Below, in pieces: positions 1 to 11,036 of a stretch of DNA of 11,036 nt (the first letter of the stretch is position 1; each line of letters opens with the position of its first letter). Made by a program: the position numbers and the translations under genes. Origin of the DNA: Bugula neritina (lineage: Eukaryota > Animalia > Bryozoa); NCBI GenBank assembly GCA_964035545.1, contig CAXIUT010000089.1, forward strand, positions 1 to 11,036. The letters are read 5' to 3'. The notes beneath the pieces are model-generated. The model saw only the letters and a program-made list of their open reading frames with translations, was not told the origin of the DNA and did not search any database.

Positions 1-161
1 CCCAACCCAACCCACCCCAACCCCAACCCAACCCCAACCCCAACCCCAACCCAACCCCAACCCCAACCCCAACCCAACCCCAACCCCAACCCCAACCCCA
101 ACCCCAACCCCAACCCCAACCCCAACCCCAACCCCAACCCCAACCCCAACCCCAACCCCAA
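1..161 (+). repeat. Telomere, C-strand (CCCCAA)n, left end of a macronuclear chromosome
   Basis: Tandem CCCCAA from base 1. There are 14 perfect units at 78-161, with several CCCAA/CCCA short variants distally (1-77). C4A2 is the established Tetrahymena-type ciliate telomere repeat. Confidence 0.97.
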
Positions 162-286
162 CAATATTATATCCTTTGAGATATGATAGCAAAATAAATT
201 TGATAAGAATATTATTGAATAGAAATTTATTAAAATTAATCTCAATTTTGTTTCACTATTAATAAACTTGTATTATTATAGATTGT

Positions 287-991
287 ATGGACTTGCTCGA
301 ATAAATTCTTAGAAAACATCAAACTATCCCTACTAATATCTCCAAAGATATTCGAATAAAAAAATACAAAGCCTTCAAAAATAATCATCTATCAACACCT
401 AAACAATCTCAAACTCGATCTTAATCTTGTCCTCTAAAAAATCACAAAAAATAAGAACAACTATAAAACCTTATATCATCAATTAACAATGAATAAAGAG
501 AAAATATATCAATGAAAAAAAACAAATAAACAAAAATATTTAGTAAAAATAGTTTTATCTTTACAAATTTTGGTCGAAAAAGTGCTTTTCCCATTGAGTA
601 TAAATCCAAGAACGAAAAATGTAATTTTTCAATTACCATCTACCCTAAAGAAAATCATAACTATGAAAATCGTTCAACAGTTTTAGACAACTCTTCTAAA
701 GAACTAGTAAAAAAAAGTAAAGAATAGATCGAGATGAAAGGACTTCCTTTACAAGTAAATCGATTTGCTATCCTTAACAAAAGATCTCCCAAAAGAAAGC
801 AAATAGCAGAAGCAGCTCTTAGTCGTAAATTTTACACACCTTCTGAAATAATTATCCCTTAAATAATCAAAAATAATACAAAATCTTTATCACCCTTACC
901 TTATAAACAAAAAAATATCCAAAGGACAGAAGAAAAGATAGATATTTGTGGATGGGAAAGACCTTTGAGTCCTCATCCACTTTAATAGTGA
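287..991 (+). CDS. Hypothetical protein, 234 aa, Lys/Asn/Ser-rich (TAA/TAG read as sense)
   Basis: ATG at 287 stays open to TGA 989-991 when TAA/TAG are sense: MDLLEXILRKHQTIP...KIDICGWERPLSPHPLXX*. It is flanked by very AT-rich spacers. No domain recognised. Confidence 0.8.
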
Positions 992-1066
992 TAAATACTC
1001 TTCTTTACTTTCATAATAATTATTTATTCAAAATTTAATTTTTATTTCAATAAAAATCGATAATCA

Positions 1067-3046
1067 TCAGTAAATAGCTTTAAGAAGAACATCTTAATCT
1101 CCATTAATAGGTATTACCTCAATTTTCATTTCATTTGCAAGATGCAAAATTACTACTAGAATGCTTGAAGAAGAAAGATTGATATTTATCTAACTAAGTC
1201 GTATCTAGCGAAGTTAGAATACTTTTTCAGTCAATTTTTCTTTCACATCTCTAATATTTCTGATTGTATTGTTTGCAAATCTGTCTGAAGGTTGAAAATT
1301 CCATGATACTTGTGAAGAAGTTCCTATTTAAATAGGAGCTTAGTTATCAATTTAACAAGTACTCATTTCATTTTTTTGATGACTTTTTTATATTTCCATT
1401 TAAGGATATTATTAATTTTCAGGCCTTTAGATAGCTAGAAAACTATTCTGAATAGGTTTTATTGAAATTGATTTTACTTCTTATGGAAATATTCTTTTAA
1501 ATGGTTCACTAAATATACTATATTATACACATTTATTGGAAGCAAAAATTTATCTTGAACTTTTCTCTGTAATATTTCTTTACTGTCATATTTAGATCTT
1601 AAAACATTTTGCCTATTTTATTTTCTGTGATCTAAAAAATCGATAAAATCTTCATCAACTTATTTCTTTTTGATCTATTTTTTTCCTCTTTTTTCTCGAC
1701 GCTTTATTTTTCTTGACTGAAGTTTCATCCCCTTGAATTAAAGTTCCCAAGGAGTCATTTCTGAGTTATATTATGTTTCAGCACTGAGAAAAAAATGAGG
1801 ACCATATTTTTGAGAGAAGTAACTTTGAGTTTCATCTTCATCAATTGAATTAGTAGGAAGATCTTCTGAATATTGAGTGAATTCATTTTGATTCAAAGAG
1901 AAATTCAATTAGTTTTAATTTTGGGAAGATCCTTCTTCTATTTAAACTGGCTTCAGTTCTTCTACATTTTTGTACTAGTAGTTTATCTAATCAGTAAAAT
2001 CATCTACCAAATTCATACCTTAGAAAATTCCTTCTCTTGCATTTTACTTTTTGAAATGAGACATGTTAGCGAAGGAACTGCTGGTTTGTGCTATGAAGTT
2101 TAATTTCTTGAATTCTTATGAAATAAATCGAGGAATTTATGAAGAAGTATATGCTGTTTTTGTCGATTATTCTTCCTAAAATTCATTTGATTCAAAAGGA
2201 GAATCAATTATACTTTAACCCTTAAGATTATCTCCATTCTCTTAAACTTTCTAATTAAAAAAAGTAATTTGACCATTACTTCCAGTCTATTTGACAGATA
2301 AGTACTTAAAAAACATTCAGAAAAAGACTTTTCAAAGTGTCTGAATCAAAAGCCTGCAATTTTTTATTGAAAAGAGGATCAGCTGTAAAATTCATCAAAT
2401 TTTTTTTGATACTTATTTTTTATGGCTACTAGCAATTAATACTCCCTATTTAATATGAGGCCATTGCCTCATTCTAGCCTATACTACTTACATCCATCTG
2501 CAAAAGTGCTCCTCTTTGCTTTCTACTCCTTTCTTCAGGTTATTCAGAGTCAGTTTTATTTGAAACAACTCTTACTAAGCTATCAAACATTCGGTTGGTG
2601 CCCTGAAATACGTGTTCTACTCTTTTGTCATATATCCCCATTGAAGCAGACAAGAGTTCTGATGCAAATTTCCAAAAACGCATGTTTTGTCCTTCTCCTA
2701 ACTGAGGATCTGCAACTCTAACTGGAACCTCAAAAGCATTTCCTGGATTTATTTTCTACTTTAAAATAACATTTACCCCTTTGCGCGCTAATTCTAAAAT
2801 GCTTTGTATACGCTTTTCTTCATCAGGACTTATTCTTAGTCTGTCACTTTCTTAAGTAATTATGTCTTCATAATTTTAGAGTTCATGCCAGATTTCTTGG
2901 GAGTTGATAGTTCTTTGGGAATTACCTGAGAAGATGGAGGCTTGTGAAGAAGTGATGGTTTGTTATGAGCTAGTGACAAGACCATTAAGAGAGCTGAGTC
3001 GAGGACGAGAGCGAGTGTGGGTAATATTTGTTTTTCGTCTACTCAT
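1067..3046 (-). CDS. NCAPH: Condensin I kleisin subunit (CAP-H / Barren / Brn1 / Cnd2 family), ~639 aa after removing 3 tiny introns
   Basis: Hand translation gives family motifs in the expected order: LARKG-KINPGNAF, FWKFASELLSASMGIYDKRVEHV (cf. NFxxASxTLDAxxKIYxxRVD), ADPLFNKKLQAFDSDTLKSLFLN (cf. VDPLFxKxxAxFDE..LLLN), KFLLP, and C-terminal ILVVILHLANEMKI (cf. FICLLHLANE). ATG at 3046-3044, TGA at 1069-1067, immediately followed by a second TGA. Confidence 0.92.
1509..1528 (-). other. 20-nt spliceosomal intron in CAP-H gene
   Basis: GTATAATATAGTATATTTAG on the minus strand. Removal restores the frame leading to the LHLANE C-terminus. Confidence 0.85.
2287..2305 (-). other. 19-nt spliceosomal intron in CAP-H gene
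   Basis: GTACTTATCTGTCAAATAG on the minus strand. Without splicing the frame hits TGA at 2206-2204; with splicing it reads LFLNVFX-TGSNGQITF and stays open to the next intron. Confidence 0.85.
2756..2776 (-). other. Probable 21-nt in-frame intron in CAP-H gene
   Basis: GTAAATGTTATTTTAAAGTAG. Removal joins LARKG to KINPGNAF, matching the kleisin L-x-x-x-N-K-I-x-x-x-N-A-F spacing. It is frame-neutral, so the ORF does not force it. Confidence 0.65.
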
Positions 3047-3203
3047 TACTATTTGAATTATAAATGTGCAAGTTAACTTTAAAGATTGCCTCCATTTTTA
3101 CTTCAATAATTAACTTTCATCAAAAATTAATCACTAATCAATGGATAATTATCTTTTTAGATCTGAATTATTTGATTCAAGTTATTTAGTTATATAATAT
3201 ATA
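3047..3203. promoter_or_regulatory. 157-bp divergent intergenic region (probable bidirectional promoter)
   Basis: AT-rich spacer between head-to-head ATGs at 3046 (minus) and 3204 (plus). Function inferred from position only. Confidence 0.5.
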
Positions 3204-4897
3204 ATGAACAAAAGCTAAATTTCCAACGATTTTAACTTTCAATTCTAACTCGATATTTCTAATACTCAAAACAAAGATAAAACTGAACATTTTTTCTCAA
3301 AAGAAGGATTCCAGCTTGAAGACTTCATGAACATTGGAGATAGAACAAATAAAAGTGATAAATTCGAATCTAAAATCCATCAAAACACATCTTAAATATC
3401 TAAAAAGTAACCTTAAGATCAACTACCATCAGTTTTCATTGATGAACTATCTTCTCATTCAGTAATAAGAAAAAATACGAGAGATTAACTCATTGTTTCT
3501 TCATCTCACATGTCTCAGAATGCAAGCGGTTCCATCACATCTCCAAAATTTGCATAAGCCACTGCTAAGAGTATTTCATTGCCTCCAAGTAAACAGTAAT
3601 TTACTTTAAGAAGAGTTAATGAACAGAAAAATGATGAAATTATCAGAAAAGAATAACATAAAAAGAGTGCTTTTATCAAAAAGGATCACCATTTTGATCC
3701 TCTTCTAAGTTAATATCACAGTATTTAAAGTCAAATTAAATTTTATGAAGAGCAAACTCAAAAAATAATTTATTAAAACTCCAAAATGGAAGACTAAACT
3801 TAAAATTTAATGATGAGTTTCAACAGCGTAAGTTATTAATCATAATTGGATCATTATGCAAAGGAAATCAAAGATATTAATAGACAAATAGAACAAGAAA
3901 GACAACTATAAAAGCAACTAAATAAAATGGTATCACAATTAGAAGAAGAATATCATGGAACAGTTAATTCAATAAAAACTATGGATTTTCCTCGATCAGC
4001 TATTGTTTTTAAAGATGAAGCTAAGGCTTTAATAGATGATATTAATAGTTTAAAAGTTTAATTCTAAGCTTTAGAAAGAGACGATGGATCATTAAATCTT
4101 AGTTCAACTCTATTCGTTGTTCCATCTCACTCAATAGGATATCCAAGTGTTTCTATTCCACATAAACAATAGGAGTAACCTAGTCATAATATGATCAAAT
4201 AAATTTTTGAATAAAATAAGGTTAGTTAAGATCCTCGTTTTTTAACTAACCTTAAAATGGCTTGTTTACGTTCATAATGGGGATTGTTTTCAAACTCAGA
4301 GCTTCAGGTAAGTGTAAGTTATCGTGAATCTCCAAGGATAGTAGTAAGAGTGGGAAACAAAGTTCCCAAAGACCTAGATAAGGTATCTTTAAGACAAAAT
4401 GGAATATCTAAGTTCTAGGGGTAGGTAATAGGAGCTAAAAGTTACTATACTCATAATATTGATGTGAATCAAGATATTGTAAACGATCTTTTTGTTAAAC
4501 TGGAGTTAAGCTATACGATGTACTTTTCAATTGATTTAGATTGTAGTAGAAAAAAATGATAACTTTGTTTATACCAGCTGGTATGACTACATTTGGCGAG
4601 TTTTCTCCAATAACACAGAAAGAATTCGAAGCTGATTCAAAGGATGATTAGTTTATTTATAGTGGAGGGTATCGTCCAATAGATAAAAAACTTATATCTA
4701 GCATATCTTAAATAGCTGTATATCAACCAAATGTGATGATAAATCATGATAAATAGGTATGTTTTGGTCTTTTTATTCTTCCTCTAGGAGATTGTTAATT
4801 TGTTGTGTTTCGACAGCGCGGAGAAATGCTATCAATAGCAACTAAAGAATAAAATTGGCCTCTTGTTAGAATTCTAGAATTCATTTATACTGTTTGA
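3204..4897 (+). CDS. 557 aa protein: low-complexity N-terminus, coiled coil, C-terminal alpha-adaptin appendage (ear)-like domain
   Basis: Open from ATG 3204 to TGA 4895-4897 after one 20-nt intron. C-terminal LKMACLRSXWGLFSNSELQVSVSY..IVVRVGNK...LELSY...ITLFIPAGMTTFGEFSPITQKEF resembles the AP-2 alpha ear (GVLFEN..LQIG..FYGNK..LKLP..KF.P...DF). The CDS is solid; the domain call is moderate. Confidence 0.8.
4520..4539 (+). other. 20-nt spliceosomal intron
   Basis: GTACTTTTCAATTGATTTAG. The unspliced frame stops at 4557-4559; the spliced frame continues ~119 codons through the ear-like platform region. Confidence 0.85.
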
Positions 4898-4920
4898 TTT
4901 AATCATTTTTGTTATTTATT

Positions 4921-5555
4921 CATTTTCTTACATAAAACTCAAAATTGAAGTCATCAGATATTGCCATCAATATTTACCTTTTCTAAAATATCTCAAAACA
5001 AGACCTATCTGTATATATTATCAAAATTTATGATATATTTATTGAACTTTCAACATTTTATCAATGGCTATTGTAAGATGAGACTAAGAGGAGATGAACA
5101 ATTATTGAAAAATCAAAAATATATATTTTTTAAAACTTTAAAGAGTGCATTCTGGCTTATCAAAATCTGTACTGTAAAATTGTAGATTGTCACAGATTTT
5201 TATTTCTAATAGAAAACTAAAAATTGAAACTGTATTTATTTTTATCTTGTAAGTAAAAGAAAAATGTATAGGATAATTCTTGATTATAATTTGTCTTTTA
5301 TTCAGTCTAATTACCAATTCTAGACTTTATATAATAATGTTAATATTGATTTAGTATTGTTTTAATAGCTTATAGAATATTTAATATGATATTCTTTCCA
5401 GAACTGTTATTACTGACAATCCGCTAAACTAAATATCAAACAATAACAAAGTAATCGATGAAAGAATACATTCTCCTTCTCTAAATTCAAGAACGATATC
5501 CCTATTTCATAAAAAATAGTTTTTTCAAACTGATATTAAACAAAGCTTATCCTGA
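4921..5555 (+). pseudogene. Possible decayed gene or short uncertain CDS
   Basis: Frame 1 reads protein-like (FXNISKQDLSVYIIKIYDIFIELSTFYQWLLXDETKRR*TIIEKSK...) but has no ATG and an internal TGA at 5095-5097. It can be joined through candidate introns 5253-5271 (19 nt) and 5354-5375 (22 nt) to TGA 5553-5555. Alternative: an 89 aa ORF from ATG 5264. Confidence 0.3.
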
Positions 5556-5698
5556 AGAATTTTTCATTATTTTAGTGCCCAAATACATCTTTAAAGAAAG
5601 TTCTGTACTTCCTAAGGTTTAAGTTTTAAAAAATCAATAAGTCATTGAAAAATAAAAAAAACATATGAGCAAAAAAATCATTTAAGAGTGAACTGGCT

Positions 5699-6103
5699 TC
5701 AGTTGGGGACTTGCTTGAAATCCTCACCGTCAGTTGAGTTTGAAAATTTAGTTTGGGCCTAAATATCTTTATTAGCCTGAGTCAATGTGGTGGAAGAAAG
5801 ATTGAGGATGAGATTTTTGTTTTTGAATTCAAAGCTGAAGTTTTTGTTATTTGAGTTCTTTTTGATGAAGAGAGTGCCCACTTTTTTGCGACTGTCATAG
5901 CACCAGACTTCTAGCTTGTCTATTTCTTCATGAGCTTCAACCAAAAAGGGAGAATCAGAGGAAAGAACATCTTTTGTAGATGAGACTGATTAGATCTATT
6001 CATCATGGTAGGCGATGACATAGAAGTTGGTCTGTGAGAATCCAGTCTTGATTTTCTTTAAATCTTTGATTTGTAGGAGAACCTTGTATTGGACTGTTGA
6101 CAT
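5699..6103 (-). CDS. Small 134 aa protein, possibly a divergent stand-alone C2-like beta-sandwich
   Basis: MSTVQYKVLLQIKDLKKIKTGFSQTNFYVIAYHDEXIXSVSS...KLEVWCYDSRKKVGTLFIK...DGEDFKQVPN*. Intronless, relatively rich in C-ending codons (TTC, ATC, AAC, CTC). It extends ORF-track entry 5759..5944 through TAA/TAG. LEVWCYD..KVGTLFI resembles C2 LEVWDxD...IGxxxI. Confidence 0.85.
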
Positions 6104-6627
6104 TTGCTTTTTAATTAATATAACATGTGAGATGAAATCTGGAATTTACAAGTGATACCTTCAGTAACAGTAAATCATTAATTTTACATAGTTTCATGAT
6201 TTTATTCCCTTATTGACCCATTATTACTCTAATTGAGCTTCATAATATTCTCTAATAATTGATTATTAAGGATTAATGATAAATACAAAAAGGAAATTTT
6301 TGATACCTTCTTCATCTAATATTATAAAATAATGCAATATCATTCTTATAACTTTGTTTTTAACCTTTTGTTTGACTATTGTAGGATAAATAACTAGTTT
6401 CTAACAGTTTTAATCTTTAATTCAAAAAAAAAAGGATTAAATATATCAATTAACATAAAGTAACTCATTTCTCATCCTGACAATTCTTTTAAAGAGATAA
6501 TTTCAAACAAAATAGTCCATATTCTATTAGTTTTAATCATTTAAATACTTTAAAACAATGATTTTTATTCTAGAATTTTAATAAAATCTAACAACAGCCT
6601 ATATAATTCATAACATAATATATTTAT

Positions 6628-7659
6628 ATGCTAAATACTCGATAAAAATACTCTCTCCAACCCCAAACAGCCAGCCGTTCTTAACTCATCAATAATATCT
6701 TCAAAGTCATCAGAAAAAAAAAAGCAGACCTTGTTCGATAGATCAGACATACAGAAAACAATGAATTATCCTTCCCCAATCTTAATGACAAATTTTACCA
6801 CCCTAAAGAGAAATATCATAAAGGAAGTAATAGTGAGAACGATGAATAATAAAAAGGATAAACATTTGCCCATACACCTGTCAACAAGTATCGTAATGCT
6901 TTCAGAAACCAATCTGTAAAATATGATAGCACTTCTTTAAAAACAAATGATCGAACAGGAAAATAACTATTTAAAATAGAAGTAGACAGAGATGAATATC
7001 AAATGAAAAGTAATCGCATTATGTCATAAGCGACTCAATTACCTCAAAAAATAATTTTTAAGACAGCATAAATTTAATCAAGTGATCTTCCCAAGAAAAT
7101 ATAAATTAATAATTTAAATAACTTACAAAATGCAAAAAAAATGTTCAAATAAAGTATCGTCAAAATACCAAAATCAATCAAAAATAGAAATTAAGCAAGT
7201 TTATTGTAAAATATTCGATTATTAGAATTTTTTAACCCTTTTTTCAATAGAAATAGTAGAATTATCAATGTTTGTCTGCTAAAAATAGGGCATATCATAG
7301 TTAAAAATGACTAACTACTGTATAAGTTGGGAGAATAAAGATCTTATTTTTATATTATCCTTTTGGGTAAGGTAAAGATGACAAATGGAGGTTTAAAAAA
7401 GATTTGTCAGACTGGATAGACTCTTTTATAGGAGATATTTTTCAATGGAAGAGATAAAAACATATCTTTAGAAAGAGCTAAATGTATAGGATAAACATAT
7501 TTGCTCCAAATTGGAATAGGATAATATAAACGTATGAAAGAACAAATGATAAAGCATCGGTTTAGAATAGAAATGCAGGAGATGTAGGTTTTAGTTAAAA
7601 GAAATTTCATAGTAAAGAATTGGCTTAGAAATAAAATAAAGAAATAATACTAAAATTGA
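6628..7659 (+). CDS. Cyclic-nucleotide-binding (cNMP/CAP_ED) domain protein, 343 aa
   Basis: Open ATG 6628 to TGA 7657-7659 with no intron needed. C-terminal LLYKLGEXRSYFYIILLGKVKM...ICQTGXTLLXEIFF...ERAKCIGXTYLLQI matches the cNMP-domain pattern (G..fYiI..G.V...G..FGE...A....ll.i). Confidence 0.88.
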
Positions 7660-7695
7660 TATTGAGTTTTTTATATTACTATTATTCTATAATAT

Positions 7696-7782
7696 GGGGT
7701 TGGGGTTGGGGTTGGGGTTGGGGTTGGGGTTGGGGTTGGGGTTGGGGTTGGGGTTGGGGTTGGGGTTGGGGTTGGGGTTGGG
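7696..7782 (+). repeat. Telomeric repeat, G-strand (GGGGTT)14 + GGG, internal to the window
   Basis: Perfect tandem GGGGTT, oriented as the right-hand telomere for 1-7695, starting 36 bp after the stop codon at 7659. Confidence 0.97.
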
Positions 7783-8299
7783 ACTGTCATTTTTTTATGT
7801 TCAACAACATTCTCTTTTACATGGTTTATATAGATTATTATTTGTTATTATAACTAATCAGATTTGACAAGCAGAGTTAGAGATAAAAAGAATAGTATTT
7901 GATGATAAAAAAATTACAGATTAGTGCCATCATGTAATAATTTCTCTGATATTGATCAACAATTAACCAAGATCAATTGTCAAAGATAAATAAATGCATT
8001 AGTATTAAGAAATTATAACCTTTTAAATCAATATTTTATTCATAACTGTAGAAATGTCAATATTTTAAATTTAGCATCATTTAAACAATAAATAGATTAA
8101 ATATTTCAAATGCCATATAAAAAAGGAACTACAGGAAAAAAAATCATTGCAAAGTAAACTATCAATTAAACATCAATACACAGAAAGGATGATCCGATTA
8201 GTTATAAAAATTAACTGCAAAATACCAGAGCATCTCAACTATCAAAACACGGATATCTTCAATTTTGGAGATTAGCTACAGAAAATATAACTGATCAAA

Positions 8300-8952
8300 G
8301 TAGGAAGAAGTATTTAAATATAAAGGTTAATTTATAAGTAACTTCAAATATTGTTTGTTAATCTATAAAAATTTGTTTTAAAGGTCTTTAATTGAATTCA
8401 ATTTTTTGTTTTGTTTTTTTGATAAGAAACTTGAGAAAGCAGCTTTTTATGGTATTTAGAAGACCCTAGAACTGTTCAATATCATCTATCTTATTAATAT
8501 TGGATCATTTTAGTTTCAATTTCTAGCTTCAACGAGATAACGAAACAGAACTTAAATGCATGCATCTATGGGCATCATCACAGTTCTTTTTCTTTTTTAC
8601 AATACTTATTACTTTTTTCGATTTCAGTTTCCTAAATGACTGGATAAAAACATGATATCTTTGTTGTAAAATCAGATTTTTAACTCCCAAACTTTATAGT
8701 ATGAGCATAAATACAATCCTTTTTGATTTTATTAGCAAATGAATCACTTGTTTTGGCAGTTTCTTTTTGCAACCCAGCAAAGAGATATTTGATGTTTATT
8801 ATACAACTAATTCAGAATTATATATTCTTCCTTCTCTATTACTTATTTATTGGTGGCAATGATGTTTATTCCTTTGATTTTTACCTTGATTCTGTCTTTT
8901 TTAATAATTATTATAAATCATCTAAAACTTCTTCTTTTATATTAGTTTATCC
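8300..8952 (-). pseudogene. Possible decayed coding sequence
   Basis: The minus frame reads TNIKEEVLDDLXXLLKKTESRXKSKEXTSLPPINK...F*ISCII...ETEIEKSNKYCKKEKEL** with TGA at 8955-8953, 8814-8812 and 8580-8575 and no ATG. A further protein-like stretch (NKIDDIEQFXGLLNTIKSCF) lies in another frame. The lower boundary is approximate. Confidence 0.3.
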
Positions 8953-9168
8953 TCAACAGTAATAAAAGCTACATTTTTTTAAAAAATAAACCGTCAAATT
9001 TACCTTATTTTCAGAGGATTAATTTTTTAAAATGAACTAATATAATATTTAAATGATTGGAATATTCTACAAAAGAACATTTTTATAAAGAGGTCAAAAT
9101 TAAAGTTAAAAATCTATTTAAGAACATGAAAACTTCATTAATATTATTTAACTTCCTGATTCAATTGA

Positions 9169-10362
9169 ATGAATAAAATAAATATTTCAAAAATATAAAT
9201 TCCTTTCCAATAAGAGTAAGTTATATACTAAGTATTTCCTAGTCTAGATAAAACAGTTAATATATATTTTAAAGGCAAAAACAATCAAATATTTTTTGCT
9301 CGAATGTAGTAAAAAGGCGTTCGAATAGTATATAAATTAAATTAAACTTAATGCTATAATATTTCAGATGGCCTTATTCTGTGGGTTTCTTAATTTTAAA
9401 TTAAAGTTTTAAACACAAAAAAATAATTTTAAAAAGTAATTAAACCTTCCTTTTGGTTTTGAAAGAACAGTTTTTAAAGCTTGTACCTTCTCTAATTCAA
9501 AAACTACTTGGTCTTCATCTGTATAATGAGATAAATCAGACTATTAGACTGGCTTATTATTCTTTATAAAACAATAGAAACAGATAGTAACTGTGTTGCC
9601 TATTATGAATCGAAAGAAAGAGATTTTAAAACTAACTTTAAATAACTAAAAAGCTTTATATAAAGTCAATGAACACTCTAAATTTGGATGGTTTCAAAGC
9701 AATTAAATAACATATAAGTCAGCATGGAATAAACTAATTTTATCTTTCTACTAACTTGACAACTAATTCAAAGGAAAAGAAAGTTGTATTATCACGATCA
9801 ACTCTATTCTTGATGTACATGAAATTAAGCCATTCAAATCAATACAGGTTAGATAAATTTATGAGTTTGCTGTTAATAGATACTATGTTGAGCTATTTTT
9901 TGATTTACGGTAAGAAGGAGAATCAACTTTAACCCTTGAAATAGACGCTAAATAATCTAGTGGAACTCTTTCAACTATTAGTCAGAAATAAAAATTTGAG
10001 TTGATACCTAAATATAGATCAATTAAGTATTTAAATCAACTCACAGGCAACTTAGAAAAATCTAGATAGAATAAATAGAATCAAATCAGATAAGTTCAAT
10101 TTTGAATATACTTAAGAATAAAAACATTTATAAGAGACCTTAAGATGTTAAGTACATAGTTTCACCTTGGAATTAAAAAATAGTAACAAAAATGTAAATT
10201 ATTGATTTCAAAGCAATAACCAAGAGTAAAAAAGCAATTATTGAGGTATTTTAGCTAATTGATATGAAAGATATATACATACAAATGCTTCTTTCTCTGA
10301 ATTAAAATTTCGATGATGATCTACTTCAAGATGCCCTTGACTTGCTTATTCAAGAGGAATGA
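9169..10362 (+). CDS. Hypothetical beta-strand-rich protein (~380 aa) with two tiny introns and one unexplained in-frame TGA
   Basis: ATG 9169 (MNKINISKIXIPFQ...SLDKTVNIYFKG...DGLILWVS); introns 9521-9539 and 10027-10046 link the frames to ...NFDDDLLQDALDLLIQEE* (TGA 10360-10362). TGA at 9460-9462 needs a third intron, an error or pseudogenisation. The 3' part (from ~9540) is better supported than the start. Confidence 0.6.
9521..9539 (+). other. 19-nt intron candidate
   Basis: GTATAATGAGATAAATCAG contains the TGA that closes the downstream frame. Removal gives FKNYLVFIY-YXTGLLFFIK. Confidence 0.6.
10027..10046 (+). other. 20-nt intron
   Basis: GTATTTAAATCAACTCACAG. Removal shifts into the frame running ~105 codons to TGA 10362. 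Confidence 0.75.
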
Positions 10363-10901
10363 TCAAATATATAATATATTTTACTTATTTTATAATACTA
10401 TACCTAAATAATATCTTAAGTAGCTGTAATTTTCTTACATTGTTTACTTAACTCAATAAATTTGAAATTATTTCGATTGTTAACTATAATTAATTCAAAA
10501 ACAATCACCGGCTTGATGGAATCATAAATAGTTAATCAGATAAAAATATTTATTTACTATCAAAATAAAAATATGTATTTCATAAGAATATATTTACTAC
10601 AATTGATAAAATTATATTTTCTTATTATTAGTTGAAATTATTGATATTTTATCTCCTATCTTATCCTTATCAATAATTAATAATTATGACATCTTGTTTC
10701 AGCTACTTCACTAAAGTGTTAGGACTCTTGATCTCTTCCTACTCGTAAATTTATTCACTTTGATTGAGATAGCGGAGATACTACTTCTTCTGGAGGAGAT
10801 TTATAGCTATATTGATGTGAATAATTATAAAGATTTAATGATATTTTTGATATGTAACAATAATAAGTTGATAATAATAGTTTTCGAATCTAACATAACC
10901 A

Positions 10902-11036
10902 ATGATATCAACTCTAACAACCCTCACCATGTCCTTCACTCGAGTCCCCATGATCAAATTCCTAGGTCCTCGCCATCTCCTCAAACATGTTCCAACTCCC
11001 CAACCATCCAACTCCAATCAAGTCAAAATGAATCTC
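10902..11036 (+). CDS. KGD4: 5' part of a Kgd4/Ymr31/MRPS36-like mitochondrial protein (2-oxoglutarate dehydrogenase adaptor), truncated by the window end
   Basis: MISTLTTLTMSFTRVPMIKFLGPRHLLKHVPTPQPSNSNQVKMNL. An acid-free Ser/Thr-rich presequence-like start is followed by PMIKFLGPRH, matching the family N-terminal P(L/M)IKFxGxR motif, then a Pro/Ser linker. Confidence 0.7.
   Translation, partial: MISTLTTLTMSFTRVPMIKFLGPRHLLKHVPTPQPSNSNQVKMNL

Follow-up and report, generated by a model that had tools for sequence, protein, structure and literature searches.

The closest described counterparts of the molecule considered here are the macronuclear minichromosomes of Paramecium bursaria, in which two-telomere PacBio molecules are mostly 8-16 kb long, carry several genes and end in (C4A2)n repeats, and for which pulsed-field gel electrophoresis gave a range of 6-90 kb (Cheng et al. 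2020, BMC Biol, PMC7702705). In this species, DNA of 28.8% GC is combined with very short introns and spacers and with a copy number that varies between molecules, and the sites of telomere addition are highly variable, about 30% of them lying in coding sequence (PMC7702705). The window analysed here, the whole 11,036-nt stretch of contig CAXIUT010000089.1 from the Bugula neritina assembly GCA_964035545.1, resembles such a P. bursaria-type minichromosome without belonging to Paramecium. Its positions 1-7782 are very probably a complete five-gene macronuclear mini-chromosome of a ciliate that reads TAA and TAG as glutamate, and the record is probably to be understood as this mini-chromosome plus a lower-copy fragment that was joined to its telomere, most likely via a chimeric long read.

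With P. bursaria the molecule shares (C4A2)n telomeres of the oligohymenophorean type, the presence of several genes, an AT-rich composition, short introns and a variable copy number, and its size of 7.8 kb falls just under the main range of 8-16 kb. It is unlike P. bursaria in that TAA and TAG appear to encode glutamate rather than glutamine, in that its introns are 19-20 nt long, and in that both telomere sites lie in short non-coding ends. Paramecium itself, with P. bursaria considered as the source for its GC content, telomere repeat and minichromosomes, was ruled out by the glutamate reading of UAR (TAA/TAG) codons and by these 19-20-nt introns.

The nanochromosomes of spirotrichs (Oxytricha, Stylonychia, Euplotes, Halteria) offer a second comparison, as they too are capped, kilobase-sized and gene-dense, with very short subtelomeres and an independent copy number. 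Their telomeres, however, are C4A4 repeats of fixed short length, as opposed to C4A2 tracts of 88-161 nt in the window, where the unit is CCCCAA/GGGGTT and not C4A4/G4T4; they mostly carry one gene per molecule where five are found here, and they belong to another class with another code. In the account given in the P. bursaria study, Oxytricha nanochromosomes hold one to eight genes (PMC7702705). The G4T2 repeat is also that of Tetrahymena thermophila. Chromosomes of T. thermophila arise by programmed breakage and de novo telomere addition, with breakage directed by the 15-bp chromosome breakage sequence (Cbs), which is not kept in mature chromosomes; the window contains no match to the Tetrahymena Cbs at up to 3 mismatches. 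There are about 181 macronuclear chromosomes in T. thermophila, far larger on average than the present molecule (PMC7702705, PMC5091840). Blepharisma has minichromosomes with an architecture intermediate between nanochromosomes and long chromosomes, and telomeres are added to them at many sites (PMC9942806, PMC13685798); the two-telomere reads of B. undulans cluster near 20 kb (PMC9942806; PMC13685798). The window is unlike Blepharisma, a heterotrich lineage with a different code and with CCCTAACA as its telomere unit. For peritrichs, seven assemblies have an N50 of 2.3-56.7 kb and come with no telomere analysis (PMC12411067), and the literature searched yielded no description of peritrich macronuclear chromosome sizes. 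An earlier reading of this DNA, made from the letters alone (hereafter the sequence-only reading), had held that the C4A2 models Tetrahymena and Paramecium have far larger macronuclear chromosomes, a premise that is outdated in view of the 8-16 kb C4A2 minichromosomes of P. bursaria (PMC7702705). Its proposal of an intermediate architecture is sound insofar as a few-gene capped chromosome is the best explanation of the data, but such an architecture has already been published for P. bursaria and Blepharisma.

The evidence for a complete chromosome begins with the two telomere tracts, which are 100% complementary over 88 nt when the window is compared with itself; no other run of two or more telomere units occurs in 1-11036. 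Shortened CCCAA and CCCA units are found in the first ~80 nt of the left tract only, as expected from homopolymer under-calling in long reads. The inverted, correctly oriented C4A2 and G4T2 tracts described in the sequence-only reading are therefore borne out at 1-161 and 7695-7782, as is its placement of the coding ends: the first ATG, that of gene 1 at 287, lies 125 nt inside the left tract, and the last stop, the TGA at 7657-7659, lies 35 nt before the right one. Its description of the stretch as complete from telomere to telomere stands for the presence of both tracts, but the right tract is internal to the record, where it runs directly into 3,254 more non-telomeric bases that continue to 11036 (...GGGGTTGGG abutting ACTGTCATTTTTTT...). 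As there is no telomere at the record end, 11036, the deposited record as such is not telomere-to-telomere. The first six letters of the record, CCCAAC (1-6), are the exact reverse complement of the register GTTGGG (7777-7782) at which the right tract stops, so the junction sits at a seemingly natural, blunted molecule end.

The two chromosome ends also share a short motif. The 8-mer ATATTATA is located at 164-171, 2 nt from the left telomere, and its reverse complement at 7687-7694, 0 nt from the right telomere. The chance of a common 8-mer between two random 12-nt windows of the body (the 7.5 kb between the two tracts) is ~0.0015, a value from a post hoc test on one chromosome, and the 8-mer could be a candidate signal for breakage or telomere addition.

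With regard to the genetic code, alignments with four relatives place TAA and TAG codons of the window opposite GAA/GAG in 58 cases and opposite CAA/CAG in 21, and the TAA and TAG codons of these relatives in turn align with window GAA/GAG codons 47 times and with CAA/CAG codons 10 times. The alignments scored TAA and TAG as glutamine, and yet glutamate is in excess. In the substitution profile, glutamate is replaced by glutamine in 4 of 93 columns and glutamine stays glutamine in 27 of 58, and the profile of TAA/TAG is like that of glutamate; the amino-acid composition of the window does not separate the two residues. There are 116 in-frame TAA or TAG codons in six gene models, and every complete model ends in TGA. 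These comparisons indicate that TAA and TAG are glutamate codons and TGA the only stop, as in the peritrich-type code (translation table 30), and that the relatives read them alike. The peritrich assignment covers the code only, as the window contains no rRNA.

Gene models were built from ATG to TGA with TGA as the only stop (Table 1), and five complete models were found in the body, which agrees with the five intact genes, none of them cut by an end, of the sequence-only reading. The annotated gene span comes to ~77% of the body in a tally from coordinates, or 71% if gene 2 is cut at 1529. TGA-free runs of at least 329 codons occur in 15% of simulated 7.5-kb sequences, so ORF (open reading frame) length alone is weak evidence, and codon periodicity was checked instead. 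It is strong in gene 2 (p = 1e-10), gene 3 (p = 6e-13) and gene 4 (p = 3e-5) and weak in gene 1 (p = 0.004). Gene 5 has no codon periodicity; 7 of the 10 polymorphisms between the window and the run contigs described below are synonymous in its frame, as against 0-5 in other frames. Pfam on the pieces of gene 5 gave nothing and did not back a cyclic-nucleotide-binding resemblance of this gene. Gene 2 is a predicted condensin kleisin, for which two separate stop-free pieces match Pfam PF05786 collinearly, at profile positions 112-158 (E = 0.13) and 730-752 (E = 0.031); all Pfam matches on stop-free pieces are sub-threshold. Its spliced coding sequence is 1941 nt long and in frame. A search of the PDB with the kleisin piece returned chance SlmA matches only. 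The introns of genes 2 and 3 have GTA...AG ends, and their positions coincide with ~20-nt alignment breaks in the relatives, from which it follows that both position and tiny size are conserved. Neither of the spacers 4898-5698 and 6104-6627 yielded a further ORF that is convincing, even with two bases added that all runs carry, and scans with Rfam and for tRNAs gave nothing, these spacers included; a home-made codon log-odds scan was too weak for gene calls in the spacers or in the tail.

Table 1. Features of the 11,036-nt window (coordinates on the forward strand of the record)
Feature	Position	Strand	Description
Left telomere, C-strand (C4A2)	1..161	+	At the very start of the record, register CCCAAC...; 22 exact CCCCAA units
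Left subtelomere	162..286	.	125 nt, non-coding
Gene 1	287..991	+	234 codons, no intron, function unknown
Gene 2	1067..3046	-	646 codons; predicted condensin kleisin (Cnd2/CAP-H-like); introns 2287-2305 (19 nt) and 1509-1528 (20 nt)
Gene 3	3141..4897	+	579 codons, function unknown; intron 4520-4539 (20 nt)
Gene 4	5699..6103	-	134 codons, no intron, function unknown
Gene 5	6628..7659	+	343 codons, no intron, function unknown
Right subtelomere	7660..7694	.	35 nt
Right telomere, G-strand (G4T2)	7695..7782	+	14.7 perfect units; internal to the record; ends ...GTTGGG
Appended fragment (tail)	7783..11036	.	Lower-copy DNA of the same organism; held by runs X1 and X2
Kgd4/YMR31-like gene start	10902..11036		PF10937, alpha-ketoglutarate dehydrogenase component 4/YMR31, E = 0.0087 (weak); runs off the window end

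When metagenome contigs were scanned with the kleisin piece, eight loci (L001-L008) came up; a degenerate gene 4 pattern had no match among such contigs. Homologues of gene 2 are present in all eight loci, with the position of the first intron conserved. Five of the loci (L004-L008, from four samples) represent one sequence at 99.4-99.6% identity, and in this relative genes 4, 3, 2 and 1 keep the order and orientation that they have in the window, with amino-acid identities of 28-68%. Gene 3 is 57-61% identical to its counterparts in L004-L006 and L008 (E = 1e-170), and these alignments are interrupted at the same residue; gene 4 is 35-37% identical to those in L004-L006 (E = 5e-24), and gene 1 has a 28%-identical homologue at the syntenic position in L006 and L007 (E = 9e-10); no gene 5 homologue was found in the loci L001-L008. 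Because the 4-3-2-1 order recurs in an independently assembled relative, 287-6103 can be taken as one natural stretch. The spacing differs between the two: the relative has ~2.8 kb of extra ORF-bearing DNA between genes 3 and 2 and ~3.3 kb between genes 2 and 1 (4371-6986 and 8980-12265 in L006, with, for example, TGA-free ORFs of 287 and 387 codons), where the same gene pairs are only 75-94 nt apart in the window, and at least 4.5 kb more follow beyond gene 1. Either the organism of the window lost or moved genes, or the relative gained them. The contigs of two of the samples (L005:1-30 and L006:1-10) have starts no more than 24 nt apart, which lie ~900 nt past gene 4 and have no telomere repeat, and this common start may be a chromosome end or a repeat boundary in the relative.

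Short-read support for the body was taken from k=31 contigs of sequencing runs, which do not preserve read starts, read ends or single molecules; positions 4800-10799 were compared against them, with 7689-7793 masked. Two runs of one study, X1 and X2, assigned to organism A, hold both body and tail, and in runs that carry the labels of two other organisms only pieces of the body are present, at low depth and with 2-4% divergence. Run X1 holds 0.72 of the 31-mers of 200-7600, which matches an allelic divergence of ~1%. Contigs of the two runs tile 4800-7672 through both spacers: in X1 by a contig ending at 5135, allelic bubbles at 5106-5313 (~12 + 11 depth) and contigs covering 5284-6740 and 6838-7672, and in X2 by overlapping pieces from 5993 to 7672. 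The X1 contig that ends at 5135 is 4,893 nt long and goes leftwards past 4802, by its size to about 243. Depth over the body is even, at 22-24 in X1 and 87-140 in X2, and between 4800 and 7694 the record differs from every covering run by two one-base homopolymer indels (4922 and 5670).

These contigs also bear on whether 1-7782 could itself be an assembly chimera of two or more chromosome ends. The assembly does contain at least one odd junction (7782/7783), and two of the spacers, 4898-5698 and 6104-6627, are unusually long, but contigs of both runs span these spacers at even depth, the X1 contig 5284-6740, like the overlapping X2 contigs, ties gene 5 to gene 4, the relative has the same 4-3-2-1 gene order, and within the body neither a telomere nor a shift in GC or genetic code is seen. 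A chimeric body is thus very unlikely and already largely refuted. The sequence-only reading had named 4900-5690 and 6104-6627 as examples of spacers that reads would fail to span in a chimera of chromosome ends; both are bridged by short-read contigs, with even depth inside 1-7694. The coverage switch that it had regarded as the mark of a chimera does exist, as a drop in depth, but it sits at the telomere and not inside the chromosome.

The tail, in contrast to the body, is of lower and sample-dependent depth. Beyond the tract, X1 has a depth of 3.94 and X2 one of 43, so that the ratio of body to tail is ~6x in the former and 2-3x in the latter, and a step of this kind, with a ratio that depends on the sample, is expected of unlinked molecules with their own copy numbers. 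The copy number of the body is in this respect independent of other DNA, as is that of known mini- and nanochromosomes. The step also favours a chromosome end at the right tract in most copies. Between 7783 and 10364, comparison of the tail with the short-read contigs shows at least 5-7 homopolymer runs with one base too many, all of them A runs (9155, 9417, 9499, 9568, 9628, 10056 and 10120). Once these are removed, the broken frames fuse into one ORF of 395 codons at ~9169-10362, and a 20-nt intron first modelled at 10027-10046 became unnecessary. Homopolymer indels against short-read contigs indicate that the record was built from noisy long reads, and their density in the tail suggests that few long reads support it. 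The tail uses TAA and TAG as sense codons and has 25% GC, which together with the Kgd4/YMR31-like gene start places it in the same kind of genome as the body; the region 10902-11036 is locally richer in GC (34%). No sequence or duplication shared by body and tail was found, nor any adapter-like or repeated sequence between them, and a word search with the 79-aa ORF at 8723-8959 and exact-product look-ups of two window ORFs gave no matches. Farther right, an X2 contig departs from the window at 10364, immediately after the TGA of the tail gene, and enters a different sequence, and 10400-10799 has no depth in the X1 and X2 contigs. Another mis-join, an allele that diverges here and an AT-rich spacer that failed to assemble are all conceivable causes of this pattern.

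The sequence of events that would account for the record starts in the germline, where, by analogy with other ciliates, a chromosome would be cut on either side of the five-gene block during macronuclear development. Telomerase would then add G4T2 repeats de novo at 162 and 7694, and the 7.5-kb body would persist as a separate linear molecule, amplified to a copy number of its own. The 3.25 kb of the tail, taken from inside another chromosome of this organism that is present in fewer copies, would have become attached to the blunt telomere end (...GTTGGG); the likeliest cause lies in vitro, either as a chimeric long read formed by ligation or as polymerase run-off and re-priming in amplification. 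The assembler would finally have extended the contig with the chimeric read, leaving the tail poorly polished. The tracts, the genes, the depth step, the contrast in errors, the synteny and the genetic code come directly from the analysis; that one and the same molecule bears both telomeres, how it formed in development, and a joining of the tail in vitro are inferred.

For the junction itself, an 88-nt telomere would be impassable for a long-read layout without a read that contains the junction, which implies that at least one read ran from body through telomere into tail. The idea that reads of a short isoform left the internal telomere in the consensus as an artefact was rejected for this reason, and because clipped read ends make no insertions. 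Since the tail starts with unique sequence and not with C4A2, it is an internal fragment and not a whole chromosome, and the depth step and the poor polish together make a chimeric read the simplest account. Several observations weigh against this account. The right telomere addition site and the junction fall within the masked interval 7689-7793 of the k=31 contig comparison, and the X1 contig that covers the tail extends for 149 letters leftwards of 7794. A third contig at 7666 has a depth of 3.8 in X1 and 44.9 in X2, close to the 3.94 and 43 of the tail, and this match could reflect a physical link between the tail and one right-end allele. An X2 contig, moreover, exits the window at 7665 and continues in more than 250 nt of unrelated sequence; at this place (7665-7672), 22 nt from the telomere site, there is a T6/T7 length polymorphism, with three contig versions in both runs. 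The contigs of the relative, together at least 18 kb, contain extra genes and neither a gene 5 homologue nor telomere repeats, and a layout of this kind indicates that packaging into 7.8 kb is not conserved.

These observations leave some room for alternative fragmentation, in which 7.8 kb would be the major isoform and a minor natural molecule, possibly from one allele, would continue to 7783 and beyond, body and tail being germline neighbours. Depth to the right of the tract is lower and not zero, the third contig shares the depth of the tail in both runs, and in P. bursaria telomeres are known to be added at variable sites, with isoforms that overlap (PMC7702705). A long isoform, however, would give 7694/7783 directly, whereas the record has 88 nt of telomere in between, and reads of the short isoform would be clipped in the consensus rather than inserted into it. 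From k=31, a direct junction predicts ~63 letters to the left of 7794 in the X1 contig and not 149, and the high error density of the tail suggests very few long reads. The relative gives no test in this matter because its contig stops ~900 nt beyond gene 4. On balance, alternative fragmentation is rather unlikely. A real interstitial telomere, produced in vivo when a capped end is fused to another chromosome or primes the copying of one, would fit a junction at the same register as the natural end and the possible depth match of one right-end allele with the tail in two samples, but the 2-6x step in depth at the tract confines it to at most a minority of molecules, and a tail this poorly polished points to support from a single read. 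Since a perfect repeat of 88 nt is too long for any k=31 contig to hold, confirmation of such a structure is beyond the short-read data, and no ciliate precedent turned up in literature searched for other purposes, with no search dedicated to it. An interstitial telomere is accordingly improbable, and it would be just as surprising if the 3' end of the capped mini-chromosome were extended in vivo by copying or joining another chromosome, always at ...TTGGG, to give head-to-tail chains.

Telomere-like termini are also known from germline transposon-like elements, among them Tel-1 of Tetrahymena and TBE of Oxytricha. A transposon-like germline element in place of a chromosome would explain why inverted telomeric repeats flank a discrete block and why one tract is internal to the record. 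The cargo, however, is cellular (four ordinary ORFs besides a putative condensin kleisin), and the Pfam results include neither a transposase nor an integrase; no inverted repeats extend beyond the telomere tracts, the left tract lies at the end of the record, and the depth of the body is above that of the flanking DNA and not below it. Such an element is highly improbable. The preferred reading remains that of a capped five-gene mini-chromosome to which a fragment of another chromosome was joined in a chimeric long read.

Taken in this way, the window presents a real but ordinary member of a known architecture, together with a previously unrecognised junction that is most likely an artefact. 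What is distinct here is the lineage, with its apparent glutamate reading of UAR codons and its introns of 19-20 nt, and the short intergenic ends that have the same 8-mer beside both telomeres. A practical consequence is that contigs of this assembly can run beyond the true chromosome end, so that chromosomes are to be delimited by telomere positions and not by contig ends, and internal telomeres need scrutiny at the read level before biological claims are made from them. While one contig cannot show genome-wide fragmentation, if the pattern were true across the genome, a ciliate with UAR as glutamate would keep its somatic genome as precisely bounded chromosomes of ~5-9 kb, each with a few genes and with telomeres of the Tetrahymena type. 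It would then be a second C4A2 lineage after P. bursaria with this architecture, one whose ends look reproducible and intergenic, and it would aid the comparison of how breakage sites are chosen.

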